Notes under the pieces: generated by a model
The model's input: only the letters and a program-made list of their open reading frames with translations
Told to the model about the DNA's origin: nothing
Databases searched by the model: none
Shown: positions 1,568-53,351 of the stretch, one piece after another
How the letters are laid out: each line of letters begins with the position of its first letter
Numbering within the stretch: the stretch's first letter is position 1
Translations under genes and position numbers: made by a program
Source of the DNA: Syncephalis fuscata S228
Lineage: Eukaryota; Fungi; Zoopagomycota
Length of the DNA: 64,000 bases
Assembly: GCA_025786725.1 (NCBI GenBank)
Contig: JAHLTZ010000020.1
Span: forward strand, 186,001-250,000
Direction of reading: 5' to 3'

Positions 1568-4500
1568 TTACAACCAAGGACGGAATGAAGCATTATTATA
1601 ACTAGATGATGATGATGATGATGATGATGGTTGAGATAATACTATATCCTGTTGAGATGTATTCGTATTAAGCTGTTTAACACGATCTTGCTCTACTTGC
1701 TCCTCTGATTCATTCAAAGCATCTTGTTTTGACGTACTTTCTTCAACCAACGGAAAAGCATAGTCAGAGCCTTTCCTATTAATAGCCGCATGATTATCAC
1801 TATGCTTTTCATTCGGTGGCGAATTCGTCAAGGCTGGGGACGGCGGAGAGTCTATCGCACCCATAGGCAATCTTAGTAAGTGAGAAGGCTTTACTTTAGA
1901 TGATAGATTCACACTAACGTTTGAAGAGGTTGATGAAGACGGCGAATACGAAGAGCTATCACGACCCTCGATCATTGATGACTTATTCGCTAATTGCGTA
2001 TCATCGCCGTCATCATCAGCTTTACAACTACTCTCGATCTCGGACATCTGATCACTACTAGCACTATTACTATCACTTTCATTAGGTTGTTGTTGTTGTT
2101 GTTGTGATACAAATGACGCAGCCGATGCTAGAACCGACATCGATCCATCTTTACCCTCTGTCTTGCCCGTTGTTGCCGTTGTCTTCTTCTTTGCTGATCG
2201 ATCAGCTGCTGTCACTTTAAACGCTGCCCGTCGCGAACCACGAACCACATTAGGTAATGGGGTCGCCGGTGCAGCACTAAATCGACTCAAATTCGGTTCA
2301 GATTGGCGTCGCTGATACCTGGATGACTTGCTCGCCCATGGTGATGTCGATGGCGATGTATACTTCCACGATGATCTTAATTGTTGATCACCTGAAACCG
2401 CAGTCGATGAAGGGGTCATAGCTGGTTTATTCGCCATACGATGTCCATTATTACCATTCTCTTCAATAACTGTTAATGATGGTCGAGGCGATGTACTAGC
2501 CGGTATACTTGATGATGTCATTACTCGATTGGGATAATAGTAATAGGGTGGTGGATGTGGATGTGACATAGTCCCTTCATAATAAACGGGTCCTTGGGGT
2601 GTTAGTGGTAGAGAGGCACCACTATGAGGTGGATGCGGCAACTGTGGTGGTAGACAAGCAGTCATAGGTGATGGATAAGGTATCATCATATAACCTGGTG
2701 GTGGCATAGGCATAGGCATAGGCATAGCTCTAGACGGAATACCTTCTAGTGATGGATGTCGTCGATGTCCCATTACTCTACTAGGTCGAGGTTGTTGTTG
2801 ATCCATTACATAAGGTGTAGTAGCAACAACACCAACACCACTATGTCGTCTAGTATGGCCGGCAACGGGTGATGGTGGTATATCTACACCGGCCGGTGGT
2901 CCATGGGGTCGATATCCACTCGGGGGTGGCAATAGTGTAGGTGACACACCAATCGCCTCATTATAACTACCACTACTAGTAGATGATGATGATGGTGGTG
3001 GTGGTCCTACAGGCCCTGAAGGTCGATAGAACATAGGTGAGACAGGTGCAGATAGTAATGGTGATGGGCCATAGTAATTAGGAGGGGGTGCCATAGTGTA
3101 GTTAGCCGATGTAGGAGAAGGTAGAGGTGGTGGTAGCACTCGTCCATACAGTAATGGATGTTGAGGCGGTGTAGCTGTTGTAGCAGAATGTGGTGGTGGT
3201 GGTAGATGTGATGGATAGTGTAGATGTTCAGGAAAAGTGCCTGTTAATGGTGCAGTTAATGGACCTCTATTATAATAATAAGGATGATGCTGATGATGAT
3301 GGGATGCAGTGCCAGGTGAGTGTAATGGATATCGATATGGATAAACACCACTATTTTTACCAGAACTACTACCACTACTGTGATCACCACCACCCTCCAT
3401 CATCATCATATAGTGTGATGACATGGCAGGTTGATAGGGAATAGCTTGAATAGGTGGTGGTCGAGTACCACCAGTATTAGTATTAATGGCAGTGGCAGTG
3501 GCAGTGGTATGGGTGGTTATCATTGGTGTAACCGAGTTCTGTAAGGATCGGTTGTGCATCGATAAAACGGGACTGGCCGAATAAAGAGACTGATCCGAGG
3601 GAAGTTCAACCTCCTCTTCACCTTTATTATTATTATTCATAGCATGTGTATGAGTATCGTCATCTGTATCACTACAATCAATATCATGACGTCGATGATA
3701 GTTTAGTCTTTCTTTTCCGTCTGTTTCTTCTTCATCCATGGTCATCATAGTGGCGTGGACGCGTTTACTTGGATGAGAGGCTACTGGTTTACCACTAGCA
3801 TTGAATCGAGTAGGTACAAATTGGAATTGAATAGGCCTAGCCGATGGAGAAGGAGAAGCAGAAGCAGATAATGGATCAGCAGTATTACTAGTTGTGGTTG
3901 CTGTTGTTGTTGCTGTAGTAGTCACTGTTAAATGTCGAGGCCGTTTACTAGGAGATAATCGCTCTTCTGGTCCAATATCATCTTGTCTTGAATAGTTCAT
4001 GTCATCACCTTCATGAGAATAGTTTACTGGATATTGTTGTTGTTCCTTTTCTCTTAATCGTAATCGATTGACTTTAGCTCGTCTATTTTGAAACCATACC
4101 TAAATAGATAATTAGTATTTATATGTATGTATATATGTATTAACATCTTTTTTACTTACTTGAATTTCTCTGTTGCTCATATCTAGTCGTTGGGCAAGTG
4201 ATTCTCTTAAATCCCATCCTGGTGTGTCTGAATGTTGAAAGGCCGCAGTTAATTCACGCAATTGTTCTGGATTAACACGACGGCGTCTCTTCTTTTCAGC
4301 ATTACTTTCGACTGCCACCATCGTGATATCTTTATGATAAGTAGATGATGATGATGATGGTTGTTGTTGTTGTTCTATATCTTGTGATATAGATGAACAA
4401 GTTGATCCAGATGAGGATGAAATAGTACCAATAGATTGAGCTCTCATTGTAGGTGATAGACTACTTGGTGGGTTTTCACTCTTCTCTTCCCATGGCTTAT

Positions 4501-5254
4501 CGGTGGTATGAGATGACTGTCTGGACAGAGTAGCTGGTCTACGTTTTTGACGACGACGGGTCAAGTTTAATCGACGTTGTTGAGTCTCTGGTGTTGTTTG
4601 AATAAAGGTAAGGCCATTTGTAGTCGTGGTAAGTGTAGTACTAACAGGTGCATCAGATAAAATAGCCGGTACAGGTATACGATAAGACATTTCAGTTGTA
4701 GTATTCGTAGTAGGTGTAGATAATTTAAATGGTGATGATGTAGATAGTTGTGGTGATTTAGACGGTAATAGTTGTGGTGTTACTGTCTTATCATCTTCAG
4801 TTACAATGACTGTTCTATCGGACATCATTGTACCACTTGCCGTGCTCATCCAATAGACTTTCTTTTCTCCCTCTTCTTCTTCCTCTTCTTCCTCTTGTTC
4901 ATTGGCCTTTGTTGATTTAAATGGCTCTTTGTTGGATTGACTTTGCATTGCATCGCTTTGTTGATGATCTGCTTGATTATTGTCGTCCTTTTCGTTTAAA
5001 TCCAATGGGTCATTTTCATGGTTATCATTTTCATCCAGAACAATGTCGGTTGGTGGTTGTTTAAATGGACTGGCCATATCCAATGATAGCTGTTCAAATA
5101 AACACTTTCTAGGATCTGGCATAGGTTCATTTGCTTCTATTGGTAGTGACGATGATTCATCGGTTATATCCATTGCTGTCTTAGATAATGTTGAGTGTTC
5201 AACTGTTTTAGACTCTTGTATTGACGATTTAGTCGTCTCAATTGGTAGATCCAT
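1568..5254 (-). CDS. Homeodomain transcription factor (~1200 aa, long Ser/Thr/Pro-rich disordered regions)
   Basis: ORFs 4112-5320 and 1568-4000 join through a 60-nt GT-AG intron (4100-4159), giving KKRRRRVNPEQLRELTAAFQHSDTPGWDLRESLAQRLDMSNREIQ|VWFQNRRAK, a canonical homeodomain with the WFQNRR helix 3. Confidence 0.9.
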
Positions 5255-6946
5255 AGTAAAAAAATAAAGACAAAAAGCAAACAAACAAACAAACAAACAA
5301 ACAAATAAACAGATGGACAAAATAAAATGGCAAGTGTGAATATAAATGATCCGTATAAAAGTGTCTAAATAGAGTAGTCATTAATTAGCTATTATTACAA
5401 TTATTGTCCCCATTTAATATGATATTACTACTATTATCATTACTATCAATAGAATCGATACTATTGACATTCTATATAGAATGTGTTAATGGGAATATGA
5501 ATCATTATTAAATGAACATACAACTCCGTTATTATTAATCACATCGATATCAAGTAATAATGGTTTGCCAAGAACACATACTATTTGGGTAATCCTATTT
5601 ACTTACCAATAGAAGATTTTGTTTTTCTCTTTTTCTCGCTTATCCTTTTATTGTAGTCGTAGTCGTAGTAGTAATAGTAGTGGTAGAAGTAGAGAAAAGA
5701 TAGCTGCTGTTATCACTAAAGTGTAGTAACGGTAACGGTAACAATAACTATAGTTGTAGTTATGTTTCTTTTTGTTATTTCTGCTTCACTTTCTGCTTCT
5801 GCTAATTTGGTTATGTTGAATGGTCGTTAATAATCGTCACCAGTGTGTGTGTGTGTGTGCGTTAAATAAACCACTGTAGGCCTTTTACTTGTACACGTCC
5901 ACCAACTAGGCACCGGAAACGTAATCGTCGTTAAAGTTAAAAGATAAAAAGAAAAAAGTTAATGTTAACAGATAAACACGCTGTCCACGCTTATAACTAA
6001 CTAACCACGACAAATATACACTTTTAACAAACGAGTATGGTTAATATAAACGATAAATGGACAAATAGTAAGAATGAGAACTAGAGTGGTGGAACGAGTA
6101 TAAAAAAGGAAATGGCAGCCTAATGGCAATCTCCAAATAAAAAGACTACAGGTGGTACATGTACCTCAAACGGTAATCTGAAGTAATAAAAGAAAAAAGA
6201 GAATATAAGCTGGTGTGTTGTTGCTGTTGTTGTTAGTAGAGCAATCGTCGCTTTAGTCGTAGATTGGTGATGCTGGTGGTGGCAATAATAGTGACAATAG
6301 AAGTAATAGCCGTAAAAGTAATGTTGCAGTGCAGTAAAAGTAAACGACCATGCGATGGGAAGACCAAAAGACGTAACGGACATGCAGACCCTCATTACCC
6401 ACACAGTAAGGAAAGTAATTGAGCGGCCGCCTTCATCTAATTGGATTCACTTTGAAACTTTAATGCTACCGCGTGTGATAGATTAATTAATTGGTTAATA
6501 TTGTTTCTATCGTTTTTAGCCTCATTTACCCGTTCACTTGTAGACGAGTATTTGATTCATCGTTATCTATATTTAGATAAAGAATAAATGGGCTTACAGT
6601 TATGGAAATATGATTTTCAGATAATTGTCACGTGTGAGTACAAGTAACGAACGTGAACACTGACAACGACTACAGTGACTATACTATTTATTCATATACA
6701 TTACATGGTTAGATTATGAATAGTGTTGATGCATGGGAAGTATTAATTCGCTGTATAAATTATGTTTTAGTGCATTAATTAATTAAATGGTGATTGGTTT
6801 AAGCTTTTTATTTTTAATTAAAGGATGTGTTGTGCTAATCAAAGTAAAACATAAAAATTAATTAGTGTTTATTTAGTAAACATGTTTCAATTACATGTGC
6901 ACACACACACACAAATGATTGACATAATGACAATGACAGAATGATA

Positions 6947-8493: not shown

Positions 8494-9825
8494 TTAAAGC
8501 TTTTGTTCATTATTGTGTTGTTCAATGGAGAGTGTTTGTGAAAGTAGACCGGTCTGACCAGGAAGTAGAGACTGATAATTGCGTACATGGCCTACTTCTA
8601 CACAGATGAATTCACCTTCGGCTCCAGGATGTAAATCGGCCATGGCAGCTGCTTTCTCTTGTGCAGGATTCCACACCACTATAAATAATCAACAGGGTTA
8701 TCGTTACTCGTTCACATTTATATTTATATCTGGAGACAATACTTGCCAACATCAGTGCCGCCTTCACGCTGCATATGAATTGATGGACCATGGTCATTAT
8801 GAATGCCTACAGCGTGATCAAAGGAGACATCTTGATAGACACGGTCAGTCTCGCCAGTAATACGCGTTTCAGCCGTATCCTGAACACATGTTGGTGTGCC
8901 GTCAATGACTTTATCGACATAGGATTGACCAGATAGGCCAGTTACGCCAACATGAGTAATATCTGGCACATGGAAATAAGTATGTAGTAATGCTTGGTAA
9001 TCAAAGGCCCGTCCGCCATCATTAAGGCTTTTCTCGCCATTCCAAATGACTAGCTTTGTTGTTAGTCGACTTTCTTTATTATCATCTGCTTTAGTAAGGG
9101 TAACTAGGTAGGATAGTCGGAAAACATATGGGAATATGGTTCGCTGTTCTTCAGTTAGATCATGTTCGGTAATATCTATAGGATAGACATTTTAGTAAAA
9201 TATAGTAATATTAGTATATAATGCACTATTAATTGCCAACTATAAAGCGATAAGTAGCTTGTAATGCTACTTACAAAAATTGACCTGAACTGCTTGTTCA
9301 TCATCTTGTCGGTTTTCTCTTGCCACCAGCGTGTATTACGTGCAAATCCTACAGATATTATTATAATAAACTCTGTAATAACAAGAGTAATAATAACAAA
9401 TTTACCATGTTGTGGAAATTGACCATATGGATGCTTTGGATCAGAGGCTTTACCAAACTGTGGAAATACTAGTGGAATACTAGCAAACAAGCAGGCAATA
9501 ACATAGATATCGTCGGTGTTTATAGATATATAGATAGATAGATATAAACATGTATAGCAACTCTTTCTACTTACCCGCCTCGAATAGCTTTGCTGCCATC
9601 CAGTATAGCGGTTTTACTATAGTAAATATCATTTTAGATAAAAGTAATATTAGTTTGTCATAATATGTTATTGGCACAACTCTACCTTAAAAATAAACGC
9701 TCTTTACCGGCTGAATGCCAACTAATGATCGTCGCGCCAAAGAGGTGGACGGTTACTGAATTGTCAGTGTTGGCAGTGCCTAGTTGCAATAGAACACGCG
9801 AGTCATCCAATTGAGTTACTGGCAT
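8494..9825 (-). CDS. Glucose-6-phosphate 1-epimerase (aldose 1-epimerase family, YMR099C-like)
   Basis: Spliced motifs VHLFGATIISW, LDGSKAIRGG|IPLVFPQFG, PQHG|FARN, YQALLHTYF, GETDRVY, VVWNP, FICVEVG. One apparent frameshift near 9325. Confidence 0.9.
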
Positions 9826-17884: not shown

Positions 17885-18289
17885 TGCAATATATTTAAAT
17901 AAATCCTAACTAGTATTTAATAATAATAAGCAAATTAATAATACTTTTGATATTTTTATTGTGCAAAATGTTTAATTTAATTACTTGCAGGTTTATTAAA
18001 TACTAATAAACATAGTTAGAACATTAGATAAATACTTTTACTATAATATGGGCGCTACTTCACTTTGAGTTCCTAGCTTCAAACTAGAATAAAAACATCA
18101 ATAACTCGAATAATAAATCATTGATTAGTTTTTACTACTAAGAAGTGGTATTTGTTGAAGTAGTATCATATTAACTTTGATTGAATTAATCAGTGTCTTA
18201 ATTAATATGCACTATTTCCAATATTCAACATTAGTGTTAATAAAATTAAATAGTGTTTCATTTTACTTACAATAAAATAATACATTTAA

Positions 18290-18706
18290 TTATGATGTTG
18301 ATGCAACAATGTTAGTTTGATTTCTTATAATAGTAGGTGGTAAGAAATCAGAAGGTCTTGGTTCACCACTAGCCATTGTACTGAATATACTGTGCATGTT
18401 TCTACTAGCATTAACATTGCACTATTTATTCATTCATATAAACCATTGGTCTATTGCTTCATCTCTTAGAATATGATTATACTTCATTATTTTAATAATG
18501 ACATCTTCTATGACTACACCTGTCTTTATGAAACATCGACTTTGATTGTATTTCCTATTACATTCAGTAATTTATTGGTAGTATGCTCTATAACAATGAC
18601 TTTTAGTATTAAATGGCTTTAATGTTTCTACTGTATCTTGACTTCTACATTTTTTATTTACTCCTTTCACCCCTTCACTTTTAAATACAATTAAACATTC
18701 GCTCAT
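18290..18706 (-). pseudogene. Fanzor-like remnant A (internally deleted, in-frame stops)
   Basis: One frame from ATG18706: MSECLIVFKSEGVKGVNKKCRSQDTVETLKPFNTKSHCY...*CNVNASRNMHSIFSTMASGEPRPSDFLPPTIIRNQTNIVASTS*. The tail matches the TnpB/Fanzor C-terminal RDVNAxxNM...RP signature, with RD mutated to CN. Confidence 0.65.
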
Positions 18707-18833
18707 TACTATAACATGTATAATATTACATCCAACATTAGTTCACTTATGTGTAATTATCAGTATAATATGTAATTAGTTGGTTATCTTTATTATTGCT
18801 TAATATATATATACATTGTCATTATGATATTAA

Positions 18834-19127
18834 TTGTTCAAATGCCATTTATTTAGCCAGATTGGCTATAGGAAAAGTGATTGTTTAATAAACAACATCT
18901 ATAATAATTATATTAATATTGATCTTACATCACAAATATGTCCAAAATACACTAGTAGAATATTAGAAAGTAGAAAAGATCATTCAAACGCAAGAATCCA
19001 TGCTGTACGTAGATGCAACGACTGCGGAACGATATGAAATTGCGATCATATGGCTTTTATTAATATTCGATCAATCTTTCTACGCATGACTAGCAACAAC
19101 AATAATCGACCTCAAATGTTTCAATAG
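18834..19127 (+). pseudogene. Fanzor-like remnant B (internally deleted)
   Basis: Degenerate CCHC knuckle KCHLFSQIGYRKSDC, then DLTSQICPKY (RuvC-II/TSQxCxxC), IHAVRRCNDCGTI*NCDHMAFINIRSIFLRMTSNNNNRPQMFQ (zinc ribbon plus WNRD RuvC-III). The copy near 51900 retains intact WNRD. Confidence 0.85.
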
Positions 19128-19290
19128 AATTAAACAGTATGTCACATTATTTATTTAATTAATTTATTAACAATATTTTAATAGAAAATAATATAACTAT
19201 GTTGTACATAATAATGGCATAACTTCGATTGGAACGAATTGTGCTTTGAGGGCAGATGTGGGAGCAAAGTAAAATGCAACCATAGCCTTT

Positions 19291-19427
19291 TAAATAGTGT
19301 AAAATATCATTTGATTTTCTTGAAACATTTAAGACCGATCATTGTTGGCCATGTGTAGGAAGATTAATTGAATATTAATAGAAGCCATATGCTTGATTCC
19401 ATATTATTCCGCAATTGTTGTTGTTGC
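19291..19427 (-). pseudogene. Another Fanzor-B-like 3' end fragment, inverted relative to 19010-19150
   Basis: The reverse complement reads NNNNCGIIWN(x)HMASINIQLIFLHMANNDRS*MFQ and aligns at DNA level to 19015-19150 and 51871-52010. Confidence 0.8.
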
Positions 19428-19544: not shown

Positions 19545-20262
19545 ATAGTATGGTTTGGGGACAAATGACTATTTTTATTAACATTCGAATCTATTGAACA
19601 TGATGATGAATGGTGAGTGACATCAATCATCAAATACTCATCATTATAAATCCATTATTCAGTATACATGTATAATCTATTCACCTATATCATTTCCATT
19701 CCATGATATATTAGACACATTTTATTGTTTATATGCACCAATACACTTCATTCGTTCCCCTTATTGCGCTATATACACTATAAATTTAACAGAGTTATTA
19801 TGCTTTCTTACCATACATTTGTCATTTTATATACTGCTTTATTGTTTTATTGTCTACTAACTACGCACTATTTATTATAGTTGGCCTTTTGGTGCTAGCT
19901 ATATTATTGGTCAATCTCAGCTTATTAAGCTTTATGTACTTGCAACCTATAGCAAATACAATGTGTTTAATATACCATAGAATAATAATGATATAGGTGA
20001 ATAGATTATATATGTGTACTGGATAATAGATCTACAATGATGAGTATTTGATGACTGATGTCACTCACCACCCATCATCATGTTCAATAAATTGGATGTT
20101 GTTGGATGTTAGTCATTTGACCACTAAAAAGCAATAAATGTAATAATGTAGTGATTAAATAAAACCCCCACTTGTCCTATGTTCAATAGATTGAATGTGC
20201 AGTGCAATTACGCGAATGTTATTAAAATAGTCATTTGACCCCCAAATCACATTAAATGACTA
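19545..20262. mobile_element. Foldback/MITE-like element with ~190 bp imperfect terminal inverted repeats
   Basis: Arm ~19545-19733 is the reverse complement of ~19948-20140 (e.g. ATTGAACATGATGATG..TGGTGAGTGACATCA.TCATCAAATACTCATCATT). An extra terminal copy lies at ~20179-20262. No ORF. Confidence 0.8.
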
Positions 20263-50703: not shown

Positions 50704-51555
50704 ATGCATGCCAAGTTACTTGTTATTGCCAGCCTAGCTTTACTTACGACGCAGTACGCAGTCACTGCTTATGATCGTAATCTTATGCTGTGTTTAGTTA
50801 ATCAAGAACGGGCTAATCGCGGCTTGTGGGCCCTTGGGCCAAACGCAGCGCTCGACAATGCTTCTCAGCGACACAGCGACGATCAGGCTAGAAACAAATT
50901 TATGGATCACAATGGCAGCGATGGATCCCGACCACAGGATCGTATTGATGCTACCGGTTACAAATGGACTGCATTTCGGGAAAATGTTGCATTTGGTCAG
51001 AAAGATGAGCGTGATGTTATGAAAGCCTGGATGGAATCGACGGGACATCGAGACAATATCCTGGCCAATAATATTTATCATTTGGGCTCAGCTGTCGCTT
51101 ACAATGGCAATGTAGGATACTATACACAGAATTTTGGATCTGACGGCACTAAACCGTCCTATCCATCTTGCCCGTCATCGTATTCGACTGGTTACTCGGC
51201 ACCATCGCCACCGCCATCAACTTATGGTGAGGCTAAAATGTCATATGCACCGGAAAGCTCGTATTCGGACTATTCTACCTACTCTTATTCTACTTCTTCA
51301 GACGAAAGCTACTCAGACGAAAGTGATTCAGACGACAGTTATGTGGATACACCATCTACCTACTCGACAGCACCAGCTACCAGTTACGCTCCCAAATCAT
51401 CCTATAAAAGCACTCAGACACAGAGTAGTACAACTTATGAAACACCAGGATGGAATTGTACCAAGAAAGATAGCAACGGCAAATGTTATCACTGGAAAAA
51501 ATGCACTGGCAACAGCGCTTCATGGTCTTGCGAAGAAAAATGGACCAGTCTCTAA
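50704..51555 (+). CDS. Secreted CAP/SCP (PR-1-like) domain protein with Ser/Tyr-rich linker and Cys/Trp C-terminal module
   Basis: Signal peptide; LCLVNQERANRGL, SQRHSDDQ, MDHNGSDGS, ENVAFGQ, WMESTGHRDNIL, YYTQNFG. Intronless. Confidence 0.92.
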   Translation: MHAKLLVIASLALLTTQYAVTAYDRNLMLCLVNQERANRGLWALGPNAALDNASQRHSDDQARNKFMDHNGSDGSRPQDRIDATGYKWTAFRENVAFGQKDERDVMKAWMESTGHRDNILANNIYHLGSAVAYNGNVGYYTQNFGSDGTKPSYPSCPSSYSTGYSAPSPPPSTYGEAKMSYAPESSYSDYSTYSYSTSSDESYSDESDSDDSYVDTPSTYSTAPATSYAPKSSYKSTQTQSSTTYETPGWNCTKKDSNGKCYHWKKCTGNSASWSCEEKWTSL

Positions 51556-51573
51556 ATTTAAAGTTTTAGTTGA

Positions 51574-52050
51574 ACTTTACTTTGACTTCCTATCCTTAGA
51601 CTAAACAAAAAGATCAATAATTCGAATAATAAACCGTCAATCAGTTTTTACTACTGAGAAGTGCTATTCGTTGAAGCAGTGCCATATCAACTCCGATTAA
51701 ATTAATTAGTGTCAATTAATCAGTACTATTTCTAATATCAAATAGATATTAAATAGTATTTCATGCTACTTACAATAAAATTTACATTTAATTATGATGT
51801 TGATGCAACAGTAGAAGATTGGAAAATAGAACAGACCATTCAGATGCAATAATCCACGCTGTACATAGATGCAACAACGACAACTGTGGAACAATATGGA
51901 ATCGCGATCAATGGCTTTATTAATATTCAATCAATCTTTCTACGCATGGCCAACAATAATAATGAACGGCCTCAAATGTTCCAAATAAAGCAAATAGTAT
52001 GTTACACTCTTTATTGAAATGCTTAATACTATTACTAATACAATGTTTTA
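51574..52050. mobile_element. Miniature (ghost-like) derivative of the dual-Fanzor element
   Basis: 51574-51810 aligns to 18057-18308 (last codons and downstream region of remnant A). From ~51804 it reads CNSRRLENRTDHSDAIIHAVHRCNNDNCGTIWNRDQ...INIQSIFLRMANNNNERPQMFQ (remnant B C-terminus). Confidence 0.8.
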
Positions 52051-53351
52051 TTAAATTTAATCATATTCTATTTCATGGAAATGATAGTATTATTATATTA
52101 CATTAATATTTATTATAAATGATGATTTAAACACAAATTAATCCAATCAACTCGTCAACTATTTTAATTGTTACAATTAATTGTGTAAAAAGACTTACTG
52201 CTTTGGTGTTTAAAGTAAATGTCAACCAAAGTGTATCCGGTATTTAAATTCGTATTTTATTTGGTAATTAAAATATAATTTTATTATTGCAAATATACTT
52301 GACACTGCAACGCATTTGTATTCTTGGTTACAATTATTTACAAACAATAGGTGTAAAATGACATCATATCCAAAGGTAACATTTTATTGTATGTACAGCT
52401 GCTTGGCAGATGCATACTTAATAAACCTTTACAGTTACATTTAACTTCAAACTGGCATCACATGAACTTCATCCGATATTTTCCGTAATTCAATCCTTAT
52501 TGCTGTCAGCATGGTTAGCATTATTGTTTAGCTTATGCCGCTTTGCTGCGCTACACAATTGTTGGTAACGCCGTATTGCCGCCTATTCAAGCAAATATTT
52601 TGTTTTGACCCTTTTATATTTCTCACTTTGTGTACTCTTTCTAAGCACATCTTCCTCTTCTCCCCACTACCTACCGTGCTATTTAGTAATAATATTGCTA
52701 TTCAATCCCGGTCTATTGAATATAAAGACGTGAACAGAAGTGAAGGATTCTTAGTAACACCTTATATTCTGGATTATTGCTGTTAATTCCTTTTACTTAC
52801 CACTTATTACTGTGAATAGCTGTATTTCTTACCGTTTACCACACCTCTACAACTACCACCTCCACCTCCTCGCGAATCTTTCCGAATCTCGTGGCAGTAA
52901 GCGCGTGTTCTCTAATCAGTAATATCAGGTCAATAGTATTTCTGGTTTCGAGTGCACGCTTTTTACAAACTCGTTTGTTAACATCCTCCTTCTTTCTGTA
53001 TTACTTTTGAATATACGATTGATATTTCAGTCTAGTATCTCTTTTTAATCTTTCCACTTTGTAAAGTTTGTTACTTTAATAGTCTATCTTACTACTCTAC
53101 AAGCAAGATAGGTTTATTTTGTGTAGGAAGTGCGTGAAGCGGCAATATACACTTTTACTGTGTTTATTGCTGTAACGTGTAATTGGATTCGGTAGTATTT
53201 GATTCGTCGGCCTGTCTTTCTTTTCTTTTCTCTCCTTTTTGTCACAAGTTGCTGTTTATACGCTAGTATTTAAGCAGCCTGATATTCCTCGTTATCTGGT
53301 ATATGTTGATTTACGTAGAAAGCGAGCAGTGTTTATACATCTCATGACAAC

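Follow-up and report, generated by a model that had tools for sequence, protein, structure and literature searches.

Composite elements joining the 3′ ends of two Fanzor lineages at many sites in the genome of Syncephalis fuscata

Anatomy of the element and its termini

The alignment of genomic copies revealed that positions 18051 to 19281 of the window (the whole stretch of 64,000 nucleotides analysed, corresponding to C113:186001-250000 of an AT-rich assembly of 29.4 Mb in 371 contigs) form a non-coding, multi-copy transposon of 1.2 kb. It harbors two C-terminal Fanzor remnants that point outwards, A (18293-18417, minus strand) and B (18924-19157, plus strand), as had been recognised in a preliminary description of this DNA, which placed the boundaries wrongly; the right end of the element, for instance, lies at 19281 and not at 19180, as shown in Table 1. 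Non-coding units of this kind, 1.0 to 1.3 kb in length and with inverted termini at both ends, were found at dozens of sites. The longest ORFs inside the element are between 44 aa and 67 aa and are interrupted by stops, leaving no intact coding capacity. RuvC-I is missing from both remnants; from A, RuvC-II, the Zn ribbon and the Asp of RuvC-III are gone as well, and B is damaged in its RuvC-II region and interrupted by an in-frame stop. As read from their sequences, neither of the two remnants is able to make a nuclease.

Table 1. Positions of the composite element, its parts and the second copy in the window.
Feature	Position	Strand	Remarks
Outer left terminus of the composite (A-side end)	18051..18071	+	Conservation step and unrelated flanks
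A 3′ non-coding region, downstream of the A stop	18051..18289	-	80-86% identity across type I and type II composites
A tail, C-terminus of lineage-A Fanzor	18290..18417	-	Stop 18290-18292 and last ~31-42 codons
Filler	18418..18625	.	208 bp; 27 type II composites only
Internal left terminus of the B mini-element (B-LE)	18626..18655	+	TTCTACTGTATCTTGACTTCTACATTTTTT; fixed start of solo B elements
Complete B-type non-autonomous mini-element (MITE) within the composite	18626..19281	+	Alignment with solo copies
B coding remnant	18924..19127	+	LTSQICPK...CNDCGTI * NCDHMAFINI...NNRPQMFQ; lineage-B Zn ribbon and RuvC-III region
B 3′ non-coding region including right terminus	19128..19281	+	Solo B and composite copies end here
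Copy 2, internally deleted	51568..52227	+	A-side terminus, 232 bp of A 3′ flank, B tail and B right terminus

The outer left terminus reads GG CGCTA CTTCACTTTGAGTT in the window and GGAGCTACTGTACTTTGA(G/C)TC in the family consensus. It marks a sharp boundary, with the conservation among 19 non-redundant type II copies rising from 0.48 to 0.82 at 18051/18052 and with unrelated DNA preceding the motif in more than 20 loci. The right terminus is ...CAGATGTGGGAGCAAAGTAAAATGCAACC in the window and ...GGGAGTCAAAGTACAGTTTAACC in the consensus (window 19253-19281), and unrelated flanks follow the position equivalent to 19281 in L028, L029, L040, L010 and L007; this boundary is clear in the solo B copies and in several composites, while variant right ends blur the rest. 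A motif of about 21 nt, GG-5nt-CTGTACTTTGA(C/G)TC, is common to the A-side terminus and the B right terminus, which are mutually inverted, and the outer termini are TIRs, the left one with the consensus given above and the right one reading GGTTAAACTGTACTTTGACTC in reverse complement; these sequences were seen where composites and solo B copies end. The same motif, in the orientation of the A-side end, is found at the inner B left end. The composite has three termini, two of the left type and one of the right type, with the outer pair enclosing the composite, and the inner B left terminus and the right terminus enclosing the solo B element.

Aligning the copies, which the preliminary description had proposed as a way to find ends, TSDs and a transposase, defined the ends, while no consistent duplication of 2-9 bp was seen at about eight end pairs inspected by eye (TA, 3-, 4- and 9-bp) in these old, AT-rich copies of 80-86% identity, and no transposase was identified for the composite. 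An IS607-like crossover at the GG with which both ends begin was considered and dropped, because the end dinucleotides are inverted (GG...CC) rather than direct.

On the A side, the tail encodes VNASRNMHSIFSTMASGEPRPSDF... before the stop at 18290, and its residues represent the portion of the RuvC-III motif past the catalytic Asp. A tblastn search aligned it with residues 101-131 of a 131-aa paralogue at 84% identity, and A-tail matches were located at 71 places in the genome, many of them directly downstream of PF07282 matches. An alignment against a copy keeping the whole last A exon shows that A homology ends exactly at 18417/18418, within the RuvC-III motif, so that the window retains only VNASRNM of the WQRDVNASRNM found in A paralogues, because the breakpoint removes R and D. 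The preliminary description had taken the ORF starting at ATG 18706 for a Fanzor N-terminal stub joined to this tail and had read R-to-C and D-to-N substitutions in the motif. Neither point holds. Beyond the breakpoint lie the filler and the B mini-element, and since 18626-18706 falls within the latter, the ATG belongs to a different element; the C and N lie past the breakpoint, as the first codons there, and are encoded by the filler, so they are not substitutions.

The filler was confined to type II composites (defined below) in an nhmmer profile search over the fetched loci, with none in type I. It has no Pfam match, and its one weak blastx match (E 3e-4) was not reproduced. The possibility that it is a decayed A exon was tried and rejected, no homology to type I copies being found by global alignment or with the nhmmer profile.

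The B side is an element in its own right. B-LE repeats the final ~30 nt of the B right end in inverted orientation, and the homology among solo B elements begins at one fixed point, with the motif (GG)AGCTAYTGTACTTTGACTC... at window 18626, where unrelated DNA precedes it in the solo copies L027-L030, L038, L039, L041, L061 and L026. The stretch 18626-19281 is a complete B mini-element, because solo copies share its fixed start and its end and because these ends are inverted repeats of ~30 nt; it is 83% identical to the solo copy L029 over 633 bp, and the solo B element, with its own inverted ends, is present at many sites. The coding remnant inside it covers the last ~67 codons, with an in-frame stop at 19035-19037 and the terminal stop at 19125-19127. 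The B-type stretch 18924-19157 (plus strand) is 69% identical to residues 33-110 of a 131-aa B paralogue by tblastn, blastx aligns it with the C-terminal ends of P0128 (863 aa) and P0030 (1037 aa), and more than 150 B-related fragments were found in the genome. Its RuvC-III reads (stop)NCDHMAFINI, where the reference motif is (W/Q)RDxNA(S/A)xN. The sequence at 18834-18923, which had been described as a B stub with a CCHC knuckle, is without Pfam support and represents non-Fanzor 5′ sequence of the B mini-element.

Most B-type copies (L039, L040, L041, L058 and others) carry WN(R/C/H)N in place of WNRD in RuvC-III, exchanging the catalytic Asp for Asn. The differences from public contigs are mainly transitions, consistent with repeats decaying towards AT.

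The A 3′ non-coding region is retained in every composite, including the deletion copy 2. Its predicted RNA fold is better than that of shuffled sequences (z-score -3.46), while the fold of the B 3′ flank is not (z-score only -1.2). An Rfam scan of the 3′ flanks gave no family match, the sole match being miR-430 with an E value of 0.9, as expected by chance. The guide RNA of Fanzor elements overlaps the right TIR (PMC10530073, PMC10711439), and the A and B 3′ flanks are probably former omegaRNA/fRNA (guide-RNA) regions.

Conservation is even across the A module (18052-18650, 0.82-0.97) and uneven in the B part (0.63-0.88), and the same A module carries short or long B subtypes, which suggests exchange among B elements.

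Further repeats adjoin the composite. A third Fanzor tail, B′, lies inverted at 19291-19420 (minus strand), 10 bp beyond the right terminus, and forms with the B tail (19016-19153, plus strand) an imperfect inverted repeat of ~130 bp that is 77-84% complementary, with a spacer of 137 bp. This B/B′ nest is old and co-duplicated, because the same junction is shared with C310, C2:584447 and C168/C17. Inverted arms of ~147 bp, 87% identical, at 19580-19726 and 19955-20100 enclose a foldback or MITE-like repeat of ~520 bp. The segment 19584-19667 is extremely abundant in the organism, since the depth for this bin reached 1600-2300 in all four public runs.

Fanzor lineages, full-length relatives and genomic copies

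The best-kept paralogues of the two remnants are open frames of 131 aa, such as the A-type L033 (...IDEYNTSKVCSKC...CQNNDCRTAWQRDVNASRNM...GKPKPSNF) and the B-type L039/L040 (...IDEYFTSQICSKH...WNRNHMASINI...NNRSQMFQ). The HMM check suggested in the preliminary description succeeded for these longer paralogues, with A L033:1432-1824 and B L039:1462-1854 scoring 37.7 and 33.7 bits, respectively, against the Pfam family PF07282 (Cas12f1-like TNB; cut-off 26.3 bits), and failed for the pieces in the window, of which B reached 14.1 bits and A gave no match. The Fanzor membership of the window's remnants rests on their 69-84% identity to the paralogues, because the window pieces are too short for Pfam.

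A search with the A fragment against 1.84 billion representative proteins yielded 580 matches, including full-length proteins of 640-1040 aa with aligned C-termini, and the consensus C-terminus of the full-length relatives is ...IDExxTSKxCSxC...WQRDVNASRNI...GxxRPxxF. The nearest relatives of the Fanzor fragments belong to Mucorales (Hesseltinella, Absidia, Mucor and Cunninghamella), and an ORF neighbouring the element has its best match, at 33% identity, in Syncephalis. A is nearest to the metagenome element L090 (49%) and Hesseltinella P0009 (46%) and is 37% identical to P0128, while B is nearest to P0128 (43%) and is 33% identical to the metagenome element; between them, A and B share 35% identity over 72 aa. 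Judged by these relationships, the two remnants come from different Fanzor lineages, and the preliminary description was right that the two tails differ and do not form a simple inverted repeat.

Full-length relatives were examined at eight loci from Mucorales genomes and metagenomes, namely Hesseltinella L075, Mucor flavus L076, Absidia L077, L078 and L093, the metagenome contigs L090 and L091, and L092. Each harbors one Fanzor without a divergent partner, and in L078 a further, partial Fanzor fragment follows downstream with the same orientation. TIRs of 66-90 bp (5545-5636 / 8774-8865) were found in L076 and of 354 bp (4170-4518 / 9367-9719) in Absidia cylindrospora L077, with the right TIR in both about 230-430 bp past the stop codon, and these two loci are useful reference architectures for this fungal Fanzor group. 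Fungal Fanzor1 TIR elements with a single ORF have been described, as has the frequent chimerism of Fanzor elements (PMC3627910), and the single Fanzor between TIRs in the Mucor and Absidia relatives matches those published elements.

The genome of S. fuscata itself contains more than 300 Fanzor C-terminal fragments. Its matches to P0009 (804 aa) cover residues 655-781 only, and the matches to a profile of 24 full-length sequences almost all start at positions 504-521 of 654, the equivalent of the last-exon start in Hesseltinella P0009 (residue 648). Since A homology in type I composites starts at this last-exon boundary, the A part comprises no more than the last exon and its flank. The search for full-length parents called for in the preliminary description returned C-terminal pieces only, the exception being a single locus from another lineage. 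Among the best-scoring candidates, neither P0009 nor the profile nor N-terminal and middle pieces brought up a full-length A or B gene, and the closest A-type relative, searched by its N-terminal and middle pieces, gave no match beyond this same locus on C317. PF01385 (OrfB_IS605) has no match in the genome, a result that is uninformative because the fungal relatives checked match only PF07282. The exceptional locus, L089 (C317:729000-738999, minus strand, ~4281-6386), is the only one found with Fanzor middle and N-terminal domains; it matches residues 80-618 of Mucor flavus P0042, includes a 235-aa open frame, and may be the last long Fanzor gene in the genome. A B-like tail lies 1.2 kb upstream of it on the same strand. 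The absence of full-length A and B genes is probable, not proven, as a rare full-length element could be missed among the best-scored candidates.

At the DNA level, a search with a 1124-bp query produced about nine full-length matches at 80-100% identity and dozens of partial ones among 692 candidates, and the census comprised 55 merged regions covering about 190 kb of the 29 Mb genome. A tails were present in 39 of these regions, 12 of type I and 27 of type II, and in about 35 of the 39 B stands head-to-head with A. Type I composites keep the whole last A exon (~130 codons), followed by 212 bp to the B left terminus, while type II composites, the window copy included, have ~31 A codons and the filler. 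A left-type terminus was observed between A and B in nearly all composites, and a few (C290, C317:174923, C146 and C24:686924) have lost it by further internal deletion. Trees built from the A and B segments, which carry no support values, were star-like and intermixed, so no order of events was read from them.

The head-to-head arrangement thus occurs at dozens of loci with unrelated flanks, not just at the two in the window, and A and B travel as one unit, as the preliminary description had proposed. The flanks of more than 25 composites of 80-86% identity are unrelated on both sides. The four closest copies (96-97%) are segmental duplicates, because they share flanks pairwise (L001/L002 and L003/L004), whereas the diverged copies do not. 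One of them is a 5′-truncated composite of 97% identity at C113:168534-169614 (L004), 35 kb upstream on the same contig; its flanks are shared with the C204 copy and those of the window copy with C221, and both the L004/C204 and the window/C221 pairs are recent segmental duplications, not transpositions.

The second copy in the window had been described as a fused A-end and B-end pair at 51574-52050, and an A 3′ flank joined to a B tail does exist there, with a wider true span (Table 1). The junction lies at about 51818, the B 3′ flank is a longer variant, the homology with L007 ends at ...AAAGTAAATGTCAACC, and the ends are the same two termini as in the composite. Copy 2 begins in the presumed 3′ UTR of the 283-aa ORF 50704-51555, since its start is only 13 bp past the stop codon.

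Origin of the head-to-head arrangement

We consider it probable that 18051-19281 represents one member of a family of chimeric, non-autonomous (MITE-like) DNA transposons derived from two single-Fanzor elements. The observations behind this reading are the anatomy of the element, the census of its copies, the sharpness of its left boundary, the terminus inside it and the searches that detected no full-length A or B gene. One part would be the 3′ end of a lineage-A Fanzor1 element on the minus strand, with its last codons, ~240 bp of 3′ flank and terminus, and the other a complete lineage-B Fanzor-derived mini-element on the plus strand with its own left and right termini. The B mini-element may have inserted head-to-head into or beside an A element, with the outer ends being used afterwards. 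The A-side and B right termini can act as the ends of a unit because they are inverted and share the ~21-nt motif, and the A-side end could serve as a surrogate left end because it has the same terminal motif as the B left end. Everything between the A-side and B right termini, these included, would then be a new mobile unit, and use of the inner B left terminus with the same right end would yield solo B copies. Mobilisation would take place in trans, by a putative transposase recognising the shared terminal motif. The A/B pairing is not chance, and the occurrence of two A|B junction types with the same orientation could hint at something more systematic than one accident.

The likeness of the outermost ~21 nt at both ends, and the TIRs of up to 354 bp in related Mucorales Fanzor elements, would also fit a single-Fanzor element with very long, anciently diverged TIRs, in which the A tail is an old inverted gene 3′ end inside the left TIR. 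This is an unlikely account, as A and B have only 35% aa identity, A is closer to the metagenome element (49% against 37% for P0128) and B to P0128 (43% against 33%), inverted similarity at the DNA level is lacking beyond the terminus, and the internal B left terminus is left unexplained.

The preliminary description had envisaged an intact dual-nuclease, dual-guide parent. On this view the composites would be internal-deletion derivatives of an autonomous transposon with two complete, divergent Fanzor genes and one omegaRNA per flank. Such a parent would account for the constant head-to-head order of A and B, for the same orientation in two junction types, for the retention of both 3′ flanks even in the smallest derivative, copy 2, and for a related terminal motif beside a Fanzor 3′ flank at both ends. 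We nevertheless regard it as quite improbable. In nearly all composites a complete, independently mobile B mini-element has its left terminus between the remnants, and such an internal terminus speaks for two joined elements and not for a unit designed as one. Type I A remnants begin at the last-exon boundary, with B-LE 212 bp upstream. A full-length A or B gene was not detected, all eight loci of full-length relatives carry one Fanzor each, and a locus in which one pair of ends encloses two divergent, full-length Fanzor genes was found neither among the best candidates in the genome nor at those eight loci.

It is very unlikely that the head-to-head pair of A and B had a two-guide element as its ancestor or still functions as one, with both 3′ flanks omegaRNA-like, guides taken from the left and right flanks, and a Fanzor supplied in trans, which could come from a possible autonomous element carrying both lineages; if it were so, an empty site could be targeted on both of its sides, for homing or for retention. 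That the arrangement is not mobile, a chance nesting of two relics copied by segmental duplication only, would suit the pairwise flanks of the four 96-97% copies (L001/L002, L003/L004) and the co-duplication of the B right end, B′ and further repeats in some loci, and is very unlikely given more than 25 composites of 80-86% identity with unrelated flanks, a sharp common left boundary and inverted termini. The composite does not establish a new RNA-guided system.

Comparison with known elements

In this early-diverging fungus, Fanzor 3′ ends, which are the parts with the guide-RNA region and the terminus, have multiplied to hundreds of copies in the form of dead mini-elements, and of the nuclease genes almost nothing is left. 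In annotation, it is easy to take such tails for short Fanzor genes. The chimeric-MITE reading would also mean that the gene-proximal end of one Fanzor lineage can replace the left end of another, which bears on how Fanzor elements are mobilised; to our knowledge, the transposase for many Fanzor1 families is still unknown.

Bacterial PATEs are mini-derivatives of TnpB/IS200-605 elements in which the ends and the guide RNA region are preserved. The composite resembles MITEs and composite non-autonomous transposons, and by analogy PATEs, in being short, high-copy, non-coding and bounded by the ends of parent elements, and the use of inner or outer termini likewise gives nested products. It differs from MITEs in having three termini, two of the left type and one of the right type, with the outer left end coming from a different Fanzor lineage.

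The Fanzor C-terminus from which the tails derive is TnpB-like, with the RuvC-II E, the CxxC...CxxC Zn ribbon and RDxNA, as in SPu-1 of Spizellomyces punctatus and the Fanzor1 families of Mucor, Rhizopus and Phycomyces (Bao and Jurka 2013, PMC3627910). As in the single-ORF Fanzor1 TIR elements (PMC3627910), whose layout recurs in the relatives from Mucor flavus and Absidia, the direction of the gene is towards one TIR, a 3′ flank of ~150-240 bp follows, and there is no transposase gene; unlike in them, only the last 30-130 codons are left here, and two lineages are fused with their tails outwards. SPu-1 has TA target duplications (PMC3627910), while none were seen for the composite. The chimeric Fanzor elements DFa-1/2/3 and PPa-1/4/5, which share one end and differ at the other (PMC3627910), are similar in combining parts of mixed origin between one common pair of ends. 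Those published chimeras, however, join a transposase-bearing 5′ part to one Fanzor 3′ part, whereas the composite described here joins two Fanzor 3′ ends and nothing that is coding.
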